A stretch of 64,000 nt of DNA from Syncephalis fuscata S228 (taxonomy: Eukaryota > Fungi > Zoopagomycota), in the NCBI GenBank assembly GCA_025786725.1, contig JAHLTZ010000038.1:123397-187396 (forward strand). Direction: 5' to 3'. Both the position numbers and the translations under genes were made by a program. The notes beneath the pieces are model-generated. The model was not told the origin of the DNA. It worked only from the letters and a program-made list of their open reading frames with translations, and ran no database searches. This document shows, piece after piece, positions 1 through 6,507 of the stretch. Positions within the stretch are counted from its first letter, which is position 1, and each line of letters begins with the position of its first letter.

Positions 1-1169
1 ACACACATGCATCCCCATAAAGCCGCACAAACCATTGAGCAGCAGTCTTGTCTCGTGGATTGGATGGTCACCGCATAAAGACGTGGCGCATGTGTTCTAA
101 GGGTTTGTCCAATGCAGTGACTCCATGGCTGCTTAAAGAACCGTGTACAACGCTTGTGCCATGCCCGAGACCACCAAACTGCTTGAATGGCGCGACAAAT
201 GGGCCCGAGCCATATCTCTATGCGTGTGCGCGTGACATCTGTCCTCCTGCTTCATTGTTTCGTCGTCGGCATCGCTATCTGTGTATAGCCTATGCGCGCG
301 CATATGCAAATGTATGTGTGTCACCAATCCTAGGCCATTGGTTCTGAATTTGTACGCAGTAGGATCGTCGCTACCTCCGTAGACTCGACCTCTGCGAATG
401 GTAGCGTTATTACTGCACTGCATAGGTGGGGCGGCGCGTGCGCGATCTAATGTGACTGAACAGCAAAGTATTTTATTTTTTGGACACATGGAAAAGATAA
501 ACGCAAATAAAGATATTCGTACTCAGATTGTCACGTTGTAAACAAAAAAGAGACGGCCAAAAGCTTATTGAGAGCTGCATCGTTATAGCAGATGTAGCAA
601 TATGCGTGTAAACTGCTATTTTGGTCGTACCATGACGCTCATTTCGCTCTATTTGTCATTTAGAATGATGTTGTGCTATTACAATTCTGTCCATAGCAGC
701 AGCAAAAGCAGCAGAAGCAGCAGCATTTGATAGAATGCATGACATACATTTGCTTGTCTACGTTCAATCCAATCATCGTTATGCAGTGTACTCGCCTAAA
801 CAAACGTGGCAAAAAGGAGAGGACGACAAAGCAAAGGCAACGTGGGACCAGTGATTTGCCAGCTTTACAGGATATGCTTCATTATTACTATCACATGGAC
901 TAGAGAAGCAGTCACACCCAGCTATTGTCAATGAATTCCCATCCAAGTATTATGTAGCGATGGTGGTGGTGGTGGTGGCGTTAGACCGGAATCGGAACGC
1001 GCAGCAATGACCACGGCGGCAATATGCGCGCGCGTCAATGGCTGCCTACTCATAATGATGCAGCCTCTACACAAAGGTAGAAACTCGAAATAGCAACGGA
1101 TCGCTGCACTCCGAAGCGTCGAAGGCAACGGCGTCATTGACCCAAGCCGTGTCCACGACAATAAAAATG

Positions 1170-4168
1170 CCACACGCTAGTATAGCAAGCCCCTCAAGTA
1201 TTCGTTGCTCACTCACCTCTTTGGCTTCTTTATATCCCCCTCAAGTTACTGATACATCAACGCTTTCATCTACCCCACCACTTACCATCCCTTTATCGGT
1301 CTTTTACATTGCTGTTATTTTGGGACTTACGTCGATTGTCTACACGGTTTTTTTACTGAGATTAGTGCACTTTATTTTACTCAAGCTCAACTACGTCGTC
1401 TATACTATCACACCACCACACACTACACTGCTCAATAGATTTACCCACGGATATACGACGCTACCACGCTGGTTACTAGAATCCGTTCTGCTGTTTTTTT
1501 ATTTAGAACAAGTTATTTTTGGTATTTCAGTACCGTTCGTCTATATCTCTATCTCTATCTATTGGCCAACATCTTAAGGAAAAAGCCAGCGCCAGCCGCT
1601 GTATATATATAGTTTACTCTTTGTTTGACCGAATACAATTGGACCCGACCGGTTGTCAGATACACGATTTGTATTCATTTTTGCCGCTCGTCCGAGTCTA
1701 GATTGTTATAATCGCTATTAGTAGCCACACTTTTACATAGTATTGATTTTATTTGCTCATTTTTGCATCCAAAACCACAAAAACACTCTGTCAATTACAA
1801 GTTTTCCGGTATTCTTTTTCTCTGGTAAGTAGTCATGCCGGATGGTTGGTTATCATCCATATCGTTGCTTGGTATCATGAGGTGAATAGTGCACATGTTG
1901 GTAGAATGGATGAGTGCCCAGACGCACACGTCCACTTCACTCCTGTCATGCCATGTCATGTTATCTTATTGCGTTAGAGCATGATTTTATCTGATGACTA
2001 AATGGCCGCCCACACGCTGGTTGATAGACTGTATTCACGTGCATGCCATGGTCAGCATTGCGGACATTGCTGATGCTGTTACTGCTTTGATGTCACTCGC
2101 CCTGTAGCATGACACTCATCACTTGTCCCATGCGTAAAAATACATCCATGAATACCCACACTATACACCCACACCTCCATCCACACATTACATAGATAGA
2201 CAGATAGACAGACAGGCATTACACACATGCATAGTGTAAAATGCTGCTAGATCTAAAACATTGAAATAGAAGTAAAGGGTCTTGTCTGTCTATCCATCTA
2301 ATTCATCTTCATTCTCATTCTTATACACATCTATACACTACTACACTACTACACTATTAGTATTGTTGCTACTGCTATTCTTCTACTACACTCCTCCTAC
2401 TCTATTACAATTCTGATACTCTCTTGCCTTACTGGCGTTTCTGCTTAACCATCTACCTGTTGGTTTCTTTTTGTCCACTTCACTGGTTTGAAAGCAAGCT
2501 ATTTGCCATCTATCTACAGTGATATTCTTTTAGTTTTGTCATTACTGACTATTGTAGATTATATTCTATTCTTTAGCCAAATCTACATATTTTGAATCGT
2601 TTATTTTGGTAATTCAATCGAGCATTTTCCGTGTCTATTCTTTGCTGTCTCATTACTGTTTTTATTGTTATCTGGTAAGTCTATGTTTTTTGTTCATTTC
2701 AATGAAGATGAATGAAAGGATACAGAAAGGTCACTCCCTAGAACACGATATCCATAGACGGATTTGTGTGAATGGATGGATGAATGGATGTATCAATAGG
2801 TATATCCGGTGTGTGTGTGTGTGGGTGCGTGGTCATGGGATCGCGTCCTCTTCTGTCATGCTCAGCTATTTTTACGACATTGCAATGGCGGGCCTTTTGC
2901 CGGCCATTGCTTTGTTGAATGGTGGTGTAGAAAGCCAGTAGTATACGTGTCGTATCTTGGTGAATATCTCCTTTTTTCTTCTTTAATTGTCTGATCATCG
3001 TGGTGATTCAGCAGTCTCCTTATCGACCACCGTATATAATTACTATAGCGATACAGCAGACATGCGTGACCACATGGATTCTGTGAACAATTGCAGATCG
3101 ATGAACACTTTTGGTTGGATACATATTGTGCCCACACGCCATCCAGTACTTCTTGATTTGTTCATCGCCGTCTCGTTTCCGCTCTCTTGGCGGCCACTAT
3201 AGAGGTACGCAGGTGGTGGCAGGTCTGTCAATTACTAAAGGGCCAGTTTTCCTTCTTAATTTACTTGTGCCACCACTTGCCTCCTTCCTCTTTTACCTTC
3301 TACGCTGCTGTCTTTGTTCACTTTCAGCCCTTCAGCTTCTTATTAGATTATATCGATTGTTTCTCCGCTCAGAAACACCGCATCGATCCATTGCTTATAG
3401 AACCAACCGTCCAGCAGATTTTATAGATAGGCAGACATATATAGCCTAGTATTTTTCTCTTTTCCAAACCATCCGTTTGCTTTCATTTCTATTGCTTAAA
3501 CTTTTGGTTATACACTTAGCTATTTGCGACTACATTTATACACTTAGTGCTTTCATTACATTTAGCTATCTATCTTTACACTTTATTCACAGCCAACGTA
3601 TAATACGACTGTGCTTTGCGCCGCAAGTTCGAGGCCTCTCCAGTTCCTTCATTTTCACCACCCTGATACAAGAAGACTCGTTCATTTATCGGCTCCCCTT
3701 CCTTTTTCTTTCTCCTTTCCCCTGAACCGCTACACTTTATTACACTTTTACTTTCTACTACTACTACTACTATCGCCACTTCCCTACTACTACATTTCTA
3801 CTTACTACTACCCTACCCTACTTACATATATATCGCTGACGGAGTTACGACGCAATCCTAAGGAGAAACGTTAATTTTGGCCAAAGTTACTCGCTCTTAC
3901 TTTAAGCCACACCTTTTCTCCCTTTTCTTTACTTTGCGTAGTCATCTTGATTACTTCGTTGCCATATTATCATAGTTGTTTAACAACAATTTATAGAATC
4001 TATTACCTGCGTGACTAATTGCTAGTTAAGCTATATTTTATTCTTTCTATCAGAGTACGTTTTGATTGAATGGCTGTGTGCATGTGACTGCGCCTTGTTT
4101 TTTACCATTATTTATTAATATTAATTGAATTTTACTAACCTACCACTACTATTATTACACTCTTATAG
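1170..4168 (+). promoter_or_regulatory. Multi-exon or alternative 5' leader of the 84-aa ORF
   Basis: ATG-free blocks at 1170-1824, 2244-2674 and 3104-4054 each end exactly at a splice donor (TCTG|GTAAGT at 1825 and 2675; GA|GTACGT at 4055). Sequence right after each donor is ATG-rich. Confidence 0.65.
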
Positions 4169-4194
4169 CAATAGCCAATACTACTTGATTCAGC

Positions 4195-4449
4195 ATGTCT
4201 CACGCTCTTTTGGTCAACCCAGCCGTCGCCACTCCAGTCGCTGTCGGCCTTTTGCCCGACTCGCACCGGTATGGCCTCAGCCCAACTCCTGCTGTTGGTC
4301 AGGATGCGATGCTTCCCTTGGATATCCCAGTCCCCAAGTCGGCGCTTCGTCGCCGTAACGCAGTTGTAGAAGCGATGCTTGAGAGCAAGGTACTAGCTGC
4401 CTTGACAGCCTCCCGCGGCCCTACCGATCAGGTTCCTATTGCCGTTTAA
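4195..4449 (+). CDS. 84-aa microprotein with an RRRNAV motif (PKA pseudosubstrate-like; candidate PKI-like regulator)
   Basis: GC-rich, coding-like ORF. Its ATG is the first ATG after a clean intron (donor GTACGT at 4055, TACTAAC branch at 4133-4139, TAG acceptor at 4168). Long upstream blocks are ATG-free. Confidence 0.7.
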   Translation: MSHALLVNPAVATPVAVGLLPDSHRYGLSPTPAVGQDAMLPLDIPVPKSALRRRNAVVEAMLESKVLAALTASRGPTDQVPIAV

Positions 4450-5874
4450 TGGCAGCCGCGCGCGTGCGCTATCTCTCTCCCTCCCCCTACTACTACAACT
4501 ACAAGCATCTCATTTTTAGAATAGCTCATGATATAGAACAACAACAACAACCACAATAACAATAACAACAACTCAGCTATTGGTGCTGATGGTAATAGTT
4601 TGCTGTGCAACGCTTATACGCATGCCTACTTTTGTCGGTGGTCAATGACCATACTCCACTTGACACTTGTACCAACACGCATGGCAATACTGCGTGCGCC
4701 TGTATGCGGATGCGGTAGATATGCAGAGCAGCCACCTGAACCGGAATGTTATTCCTATGATAGTCATGCTGGTTACTGCTGCCACTACCAATACTGCTAC
4801 TACTGCTACTACTACTACTACGCCACCTCGCTCATCCGTCCCTATCTGTTGCTGCTGCTGTTGCTGTTGCCACCAACCACAGCTCTCTTTCTTTTCTCTC
4901 GTGCTCTCTTTATGGTCATTTCTTGTTGTCGCACTATGCGTTGTGCGTTTGTCTACCTTACATCTTATATACACATATTATATAGTTACACGTAACCTTT
5001 CACTTTTCAACTAGCCACGTAATGTGTTTCCCACCGACGCGTGTCTGTAGATGTATTGTGAAGATGATAGTATGACGTGTTACATCGATATAATATGCGT
5101 GTGATGCACACAATTGTCTAGATTGTTAAGTGACTATCGCCAATGCGCAATGAACATGACATAAAGAGAGTGGAAGATTAGTATAATATCTTCCATATTG
5201 TCAGCCTATTTCTCGTTTCGTATTTGCTTCAAAGTGTTGCGTTTCTCTTTCGTGAATTTCTTGAACTCCACCAGTTACAACAATTATCTCTCAATTGATT
5301 AATAGAGAGACAATATAGATCAGTGCTTTACAAATAACCATCATCATCATTATCACAAGTGTCATTGTTATTATTATTATTATGTGTTTATTATTTGTTT
5401 GTTAGCTTATACAATTATGCAATAAATATCAATGATAGCAACTCCATATTTTAATCTAATCTCTATTCTATTTAGTTAGTTAAATGTCTATACAAAATGA
5501 ATATATTGTATTTGAGATATTAACAAACCGGTTTCAAATCAACTTGCCAAGTCTTTAGATAAATGACCTGTTTAACCACACTATACTGTCAAGGCGACAA
5601 TTAGTCAGTAGATAGCATTCTATACAAAATGCTATTATATCCATTACATTTAGTACATTAATTAGTATTGTAGCTTTAGTATATAATATATATATATAAT
5701 AGTTCATTCCAATATCTTTACTATTTAATCATTAAATATAGCAAATGACAAAAAAGCATGTCTTAATTTATTAATGTAAAAACAATTCCATTGTTACTTT
5801 ACAGTAATATGAACACTTGGCTGTTATTGCTATTACAGTGGATACTGCTATATATATATATATATCAGCAATTA

Positions 5875-6507
5875 TTATTCGTCTGTAGGTTCTTTATCAA
5901 GTAAACCGTCAAATTCAGACTTGTTAGACAATTTAATCTTATAAATCCATCCTAATAAAATGGTAAAATAATTAATCTACGAATTATATACACAACACTG
6001 GTATACGTGCCTTCACCCTCTGCATCATCGTTGATAAGTTCAGGTTCATCCGACAAGCTTGTATTAACTTCAACAATAGTACCAGAAACTGGTGAGAAAA
6101 GCTCGCTAACCGCTTTAACACTTTCTATAGTGCCGATCGCCTCTATAATTAAAAGTTATTTATTAATCTATCTACTAATTGTATATAATCCTTACCTTCT
6201 TTCTTCACTATAGTATCAACCTCTGAACTAGTTTCAACAAACACAATTTCGCCCAATTGTTTCTGGGCATAATTAGTTACGCCCATCGTGCCAATATCGC
6301 CTTCTAGCGTGATCCATTCATGATCATTGGTATACTTTTTTGCTAAGTATCAATTATTACTTATTAGATGGTAACACTATCTAAATACATATATCTACAC
6401 CTACTTGCATAAGTACGACGAACCAACGAGAATGCAAGTGGCTGGTAGGTACGTGGAGCAACAACACGTGCCGAACGAGCCAGAGAACGAACAAGACCGA
6501 ATGCCAT
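5875..6507 (-). CDS. GCV3: Glycine cleavage system H protein (mitochondrial), 4 exons
   Basis: Arg-rich presequence [14 protein letters not shown]; [10 protein letters not shown]; [17 protein letters not shown]; lipoyl-Lys motif [16 protein letters not shown]; WIYKIK. Confidence 0.95.

Follow-up and report, generated by a model that had tools for sequence, protein, structure and literature searches.

The DNA analysed here, referred to as the window, is a 64,000-nucleotide stretch of contig JAHLTZ010000038.1 from Syncephalis fuscata S228, a member of the Zoopagomycota. On its plus strand, at 4195..4449 (stop included), lies an ATG-to-TAA frame of 84 codons, a single exon drawn from the open reading frame list whose start and stop codons align with those of its homologues. 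The product carries ALRRRNAVVEAML; within its 84 residues KSALRRRNAVVEAM comes first and MLESKVLAALTA follows downstream, and the frame with both sequence stretches noted in the original prediction lies on these coordinates exactly as had been claimed. Alanine (13 residues), leucine (11), valine (11) and proline (10) make up much of the protein. At 0.58-0.60 G+C, the frame forms an island between flanks of 0.31-0.40, and the gene is single-copy in its own genome (one match, G000:C304:127591-127842). Trinucleotide-type repeats (ACT/CTA and CAA/CTG runs) flank it in the presumed UTRs, at 3760-3830, 4480-4580 and 4790-4870. A glycine-cleavage H-protein gene with introns lies on the minus strand at 5890-6350, tail to tail with the microprotein gene, an arrangement that a JGI metagenome contig (L037) and Thamnocephalis share. 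Over ∼6.5 kb the genes are collinear with those of a Thamnocephalis contig: microprotein, GcvH, Med19, a 506-aa gene and Sedlin.

The protein draws attention through the motif RRRNAV, which resembles the pseudosubstrate site of animal PKI, the inhibitor of the protein kinase A catalytic subunit (PKA-C). Among the 128,000 six-frame residues of the window, RRNA[IVLMF] occurs once and the looser RRxA-hydrophobic 11 times. The motif alone is therefore weak evidence, and it is conservation that lifts it above chance. Searches for known relatives returned little: the window protein had no Pfam-A match by hmmscan at E<=10, the PDB sequence search yielded a single chance match, to a photosystem I subunit (E = 0.63), a search of the ESM Atlas for look-alikes produced nothing usable, and nothing was found in Rfam for positions 1-6500. 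Codon comparison with the closest relative, a homologue with 90% amino acid identity, gave a dN/dS of 0.057 (33 synonymous and 8 nonsynonymous differences). Across residues 40-63 the same comparison counted 14 synonymous and no nonsynonymous differences, and against more distant relatives synonymous sites were saturated and the core protein sequence was unchanged. Judged by this substitution pattern, the 84 codons form a genuine gene on which purifying selection acts strongly.

Upstream of the gene, three blocks of the plus strand are devoid of ATG: 1170-1834 (665 nt), 2244-2682 (439 nt) and 3104-4069 (966 nt), in a window where the mean ATG spacing is 46 nt. Dinucleotide-preserving shuffles (500 per block) predicted 6.1, 6.5 and 7.6 ATGs, i.e. 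∼20 in total, against none observed, and zero was reached in 0/500 shuffles for each block. ATG is the sole missing triplet in two of the three (1170-1834 and 3104-4069). Each block is ended by a canonical donor (GTAAGT at 1825, GTAAGT at 2675 and GTACGT at 4055), and ATGs return within 8-15 nt of each donor. From these features we infer a spliced leader of ∼2 kb that is kept free of upstream AUGs. Its putative first exon, 1170..1824 (plus strand, as for all leader elements), would lie inside the first block and end at the donor at 1825. The second, 2270..2674, would lie within the second block between an AAATAG acceptor and the donor at 2675. The third, 3147..4054, would occupy the ATG-free stretch between the ATGs at 3101 and 4070, with an uncertain acceptor position (CATCCAG ending at 3146) and the GTACGT donor at 4055, 15 nt ahead of the ATG that ends the block. 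The predicted third intron, 4055..4168, runs from this donor through a TACTAAC branch site (4133) and a pyrimidine tract to a TATAG acceptor ending at 4168, and contains the only two ATGs (4070 and 4082) between 3101 and the start codon. A last leader piece would then span 4169..4194, between this acceptor and the start codon. Because a leader spliced in this way has no upstream AUG, 4195 would be the first AUG of the mRNA.

The Thamnocephalis locus (L002) also has long stretches without ATG, one of 1323 nt that reaches the start codon and two more of 903 and 522 nt; at the Glomeromycotina and Basidiobolus loci such stretches were of ordinary length (150-256 nt). An AUG-free spliced leader of this length is unusual and suggests scanning-dependent or regulated translation, and it would be an indirect sign that the frame is translated at all. 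The contig carrying the 90%-identical homologue (L040:1-922, a Logan contig from run SRR31163102) begins exactly at the position that matches the acceptor (window 4169), terminates in Illumina adapter sequence and is barely alignable to the window outside the ORF. A break at an exon edge would fit an assembly graph derived from RNA. A frame this short and without a Pfam match could also be a chance ORF or non-coding sequence, a reading that is refuted by the selection and conservation data and to which we attach next to no probability, given the dN/dS value, 21 homologues with aligned start codons, conserved synteny and the leader free of upstream ATGs.

Homologues were collected by several routes. 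A word search, which covered proteins of 41-131 aa, recovered three relatives, 84-99 aa long, whose start and stop codons align with those of the window protein; THASP1DRAFT_28481 of Thamnocephalis sphaerospora is one of them. A profile built from the four Zoopagales sequences and run against 1.84 billion representatives added one true relative, a distant 75-aa protein (P0006); two other candidates from this first profile search (P0004 and P0005) were rejected as spurious repeat proteins. A metagenome scan added one locus (L041), a Rhizophagus-like member of 79 aa with the site RRNAI. The profile of all six sequences then retrieved 21 relatives of 67-135 aa, all annotated as hypothetical or unnamed, from the Zoopagales (Syncephalis-like and Thamnocephalis), from nine genera of Glomeromycotina (Rhizophagus, as R. 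clarus, Funneliformis, Gigaspora, Diversispora, Acaulospora, Racocetra, Ambispora, Dentiscutata and Geosiphon) and, weakly, from two species of Basidiobolus (E about 0.15). Not one of the 22 members matches any Pfam family at E<=10, PKI (PF02827) included. On sequence grounds, this is an unnamed microprotein family of early-diverging fungi, and the idea of a stand-alone microprotein in such a fungus is supported.

Alignment of the window protein with its 21 relatives (22 sequences, A4) revealed a single block common to all three fungal lineages, the conserved core P41-L62 (PLDIPVPKSALRRRNAVVEAML, 4315..4380, plus strand). Residues P41, L42, D43, P47, R52, R53, R54, N55, A56, V58 and E59 do not vary, I44, L51 and A60 hardly do, and position 57 is always V or I. 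The putative pseudosubstrate, R52-R53-R54-N55-A56-V57 (4348..4365, plus strand), spans P-4 to P+1 in the alignment and in the complex model described below, with alanine at the phospho-acceptor position. This P0 alanine is never replaced by Ser or Thr, and all four of its codons are used in the family (GCA, GCG, GCC and GCT). RRNA[IV], which had been put forward for checking as the conserved core, is invariant in 22/22 sequences and sits at the centre of the sole all-lineage block. Homologues that did not conserve RRNA-hydrophobic had been named as grounds for abandoning the proposal; the homologues keep it.

Several smaller features lie outside the core. In the N-terminal half G18 is conserved outside the modelled interface (S-G-F-G-P in Glomeromycotina, V-G-L-L-P in the window protein), as are P21 and an aromatic-x-L-P element (LP being residues 40-41); these small elements may act as additional linear motifs that bind other partners. 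Several of the Glomeromycotina models (P0134, P0137, P0140, P0141 and P0139) diverge or stop right after ...NA[IV]VEA, which suggests an unrecognised intron or truncated models. The Basidiobolus members continue after the core as ...VVEA[NT]YGEPF.

For the free protein, AlphaFold2 with alignment A4 gave pLDDT values below 50 for most of residues 1-29 and predicted a helix over residues 48-73 (4336..4413, plus strand; block pLDDT about 77-86). The expectation that the protein is probably disordered thus holds for the N-terminal region and not for this helix. The C-terminal half of the helix (VLAALTA) is conserved within Zoopagales only, and tails differ between clades: MLESKVLAALTA is found in neither the Glomeromycotina nor the Basidiobolus members, and in Glomeromycotina the protein stops 12 residues past the site. 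The tail had also been read as a leucine-rich nuclear export signal (NES), making the protein an export adaptor. This part of the proposal is not supported: the sequence that follows the motif contains no class 1a-1d NES pattern, either in the window protein or in its Zoopagales relatives, the tail is restricted to Zoopagales, and it makes no confident contact in the complex model. Two further readings of short segments were considered and rejected. An AKAP-type R-binding helix at residues 56-73 was dismissed by inspection against the published consensus, and the tail is also not conserved; a calcineurin LxVP reading of LDIPVP was dismissed because the conserved pattern is L-D-x-x-[V/I]-P and not L-x-V-P.

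The genome encodes at least two Tpk-type PKA catalytic subunits (L016 and L023, which a kinase-exon query recovered) and two PKA regulatory (R) subunit genes (L028 on G000:C338 and L029 on the minus strand of G000:C317). A search with Pkinase_C (PF00433) identified PKC-, Sch9- and ROCK-like kinases and another AGC kinase, and did not pick up PKA-C. Three pairs of contigs (C201/C148, C90/C52 and C169/C168, carrying L023/L024, L021/L022 and L032/L033) gave identical scores and spans with the kinase and cNMP queries, which suggests duplicated contigs or uncollapsed haplotypes. One of the two R-subunit genes has a long poly-Asp linker. The inhibitor sites of the fungus's own R subunits, RGRRTSVSAE and FNRRGSVSAE, are phosphorylatable and RII-like and lack an L-D-x-x-V-P block. 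Neither of the two R genes found is of the RI type (Ala or Gly at P0), which would leave the microprotein as the one true pseudosubstrate detected in the genome.

The mammalian RII inhibitor region, LDVPIP-GRFD-RRVSV (peptide quoted in PMC13150408), looks like LDIPVP-KSAL-RRRNAV of the window protein, which raises the idea of a detached remnant of an R-subunit linker. We consider this highly improbable, because the fungus's own two R subunits are without that upstream block, BLASTP of the microprotein against its own R subunit gives nothing (E = 12) and a cNMP-binding domain is present in 0/22 members. An R gene is thus an unlikely recent source of the microprotein, which shows no similarity to the R subunits of this fungus.

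A complex of the microprotein with fungal PKA-C, as called for in the original prediction, was modelled from residues 36-84 with ATP and two Mg. Since L016 is split by an intron, the PKA-C of Syncephalis plumigaleata (P0007, 373 aa; residues 55-373 used) stood in for it; its kinase domain is identical to exon 1 of L016 and 97% identical to exon 2. The microprotein was placed in the active-site cleft in the PKI register, with ipSAE 0.92 in 3/3 runs against 0.00-0.33 for controls (best of three controls, 0.33). In calibration this mark was reached by 51/78 solved complexes and 2/108 mismatched pairs, counts that are only a rough guide here because ligands were included in the model. The runs share at least 80% of contacts, and partner pLDDT is at least 63. 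Structures of PKA:PKI complexes have already been solved, and the score may be memory of RRNAI; the model pass therefore speaks for likeness, not for binding.

All contacts modelled with confidence involve residues 38-62, and none is confident for residues 63-84. Bovine Cα numbering equals P0007 numbering minus 21. R54 contacts E191, K189, T222 and D224 of P0007 (in bovine terms E170, K168, T201, P202 and the Asp equivalent to E203), and R53 contacts E191 and F150 (bovine E170 and F129). At the phospho-acceptor site, A56 touches C220, G221 and T222 (bovine C199, G200 and T201), and V57, in the P+1 pocket, touches G221 and T222 (bovine G200 and T201). Upstream, L42, V46, A50 and L51 pack on the Tyr235/Phe239 patch (Y235, the Tyr equivalent to F239, and R133). 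The modelled register (P-3, P-2, P0 and P+1) is that of PKI, as are the contact residues. In terms of the consensus, in which R-R-x-(A/G)-hydrophobic sits in an acidic cleft (E127/E170/E230), the motif is invariant and the model contacts the equivalent of E170.

The same residues could instead serve as a pseudosubstrate or decoy for another basophilic kinase: a CaMK-group or PKD-like enzyme, Aurora/Ipl1, or PKC with A50 at P0. A hydrophobic P-5 residue is preferred by CaMK-type kinases and unneeded by PKA, and P-5 is L or F in all members, as in the CaMK/PKD-type pattern L-x-R-x-x-S; the core residues also fit the Aurora-type R-R-x-S-hydrophobic. In another register K-S-A-L-R-R-R-N resembles the pseudosubstrate of PKC-alpha, K-G-A-L-R-Q-K-N, and the genome encodes PKC-like, Sch9-like and other AGC kinases. 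However, R-R-N-A-[I/V] is identical letter for letter to the PKI site. The basic residues before A50 that the PKC register calls for are not conserved (position 48 is K, H, N, T, A or S), the Arg required at P-5 by Sch9-/Akt-type kinases is absent, and PKA, the one kinase modelled, passes with the correct salt-bridge partners. Taken together, we judge a different kinase target unlikely.

Nor do we think it likely that the core is a short helix or linear motif for a non-kinase partner, such as an importin bound through the RRR patch or a helical bundle, with the likeness to PKI a coincidence. The helix predicted for the free protein would suit such a partner, and of the conserved upstream elements (G18, P21 and the LP at 40-41) the PKA model leaves G18 and P21 unused. 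Against this, it would be an unlikely coincidence for a run of seven positions to match a known PKA inhibitor site, exactly or with equivalent residues, across three deep lineages, alanine is fixed at P0 through all four of its codons, and the model controls scored only 0.00-0.33.

The best reading of the microprotein, to which we assign a probability of roughly 0.6, is a PKI-like, cAMP-independent pseudosubstrate inhibitor of PKA-C. Under this proposal the gene would be translated into a microprotein with a disordered N-terminal half, whose invariant 22-residue core would act as the pseudosubstrate. R53 and R54 (P-3 and P-2) would pair with the acidic cleft, V57 would fill the P+1 pocket, and A56 would occupy the phospho-acceptor site, where it cannot be phosphorylated. 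The upstream L-D-x-x-[V/I]-P-x-x-[A/V]-[L/F] would pack on the Tyr235/Phe239 patch, the site used by Phe10 of PKI. From this modelled docking geometry we infer that in vivo free PKA-C would be clamped independently of cAMP, much as by animal PKI and by the RRGAV motif of ARHGAP36, and that in Zoopagales synthesis of the inhibitor would be controlled through the ∼2-kb spliced leader free of upstream ATGs. Several points speak against the PKA reading: the P-6 Arg and P-11 Phe of PKI are absent, no profile match to PKI was obtained, the residues also suit other kinases, and the helix predicted at residues 48-73 of the free protein contrasts with the extended form of a bound pseudosubstrate.

In fungi, nutrient sensing, morphogenesis, symbiosis and parasitism are under the control of PKA, and to our knowledge the cAMP-sensitive regulatory subunit is the one direct brake on the kinase known there. 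With a free pseudosubstrate microprotein, PKA would come under a further control that does not depend on cAMP, as it does through PKI in animals, and we found no paper on a fungal PKI or on this motif of the microprotein. In our estimate it is an even call whether the family, spread over arbuscular mycorrhizal fungi, mycoparasitic Zoopagales and Basidiobolus and leader-gated in Zoopagales, represents the first inhibitors outside animals that are dedicated to PKA-C and independent of cAMP. The lineages concerned (Glomeromycotina and obligate mycoparasites) are genetically hard to study, and the microprotein may offer a genetically encodable PKA inhibitor of fungal origin. The case also illustrates how one invariant linear motif can be enough to recognise a microprotein family that domain databases have overlooked.

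Among known PKA inhibitors, the closest parallel is animal PKI (alpha, beta and gamma; PF02827). Both are small stand-alone proteins (∼75-85 aa and largely disordered for PKI); members of the fungal family are 67-135 aa long, with a mixed disorder prediction in which low pLDDT at residues 1-29 stands beside the moderate-confidence helix at 48-73. Both have the site R-R-N-A-[I/V], in which P0 is Ala, and both continue with an acidic P+3 residue and then hydrophobics; in the model they also share the cleft register and the Tyr235/Phe239 patch. There are also differences. No sequence relation is detectable by Pfam in any of the 22 members, and the P-6 Arg and P-11 Phe helix of PKI, noted from the outset as missing, are indeed absent from the alignment, where Ala or Val stands at P-6, and Pro, Ser, Ala, Arg or Glu at P-11; an invariant P-L-D...P block takes their place. 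The fungal proteins have an additional Arg at P-4 and no conserved NES, whereas PKI, a metazoan protein, has two functions, inhibition and NES-driven export (PMC7723848). The best-supported reading is that the family would work like PKI and yet cannot be recognised as part of the PKI family from its sequence. In a bolder version, the microprotein would be anciently homologous to animal PKI, an idea that draws on the likeness from P-3 to P+6 (R-R-N-A-I, then V-E-A-V-L here and H-D-I-L-V in PKI); such homology would mean that PKI had already arisen in the opisthokont ancestor.

The published PKA consensus is R-R-x-S/(A/G)-hydrophobic, with RRNAI contained in PKI(5-24), and RRGAV of ARHGAP36 was found in experiments to bind PKA-C in the nanomolar range and to match PKI(5-24) approximately in binding and inhibition (PMC5059767). 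ARHGAP36 shares with the microprotein R-R-x-A-V with Val at P+1, and its potency implies that Val at P+1 and the missing Phe10 helix are compatible with potent inhibition. In ARHGAP36, however, the motif lies inside a large vertebrate multidomain protein that also drives degradation of PKA-C, whereas here the motif is essentially the whole protein. The R-subunit inhibitor sequences (the RI pseudosubstrate RRGAI and the RII substrate RRVSV) use the same docking principle, and the L-D-[V/I]-P-[I/V]-P upstream in the mammalian RII linker resembles the microprotein core. Unlike R subunits, the microprotein has no Pfam domain and thus neither a cNMP-binding nor a D/D domain; without a cAMP-binding domain, inhibition would not be relieved by cAMP. 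Finally, the PKI motif in the C-tail of Smoothened is reported to be a decoy substrate that blocks the PKA-C active site (bioRxiv 10.1101/2021.07.05.451193); there the motif sits within the tail of a metazoan GPCR, in contrast to the free microprotein described here.
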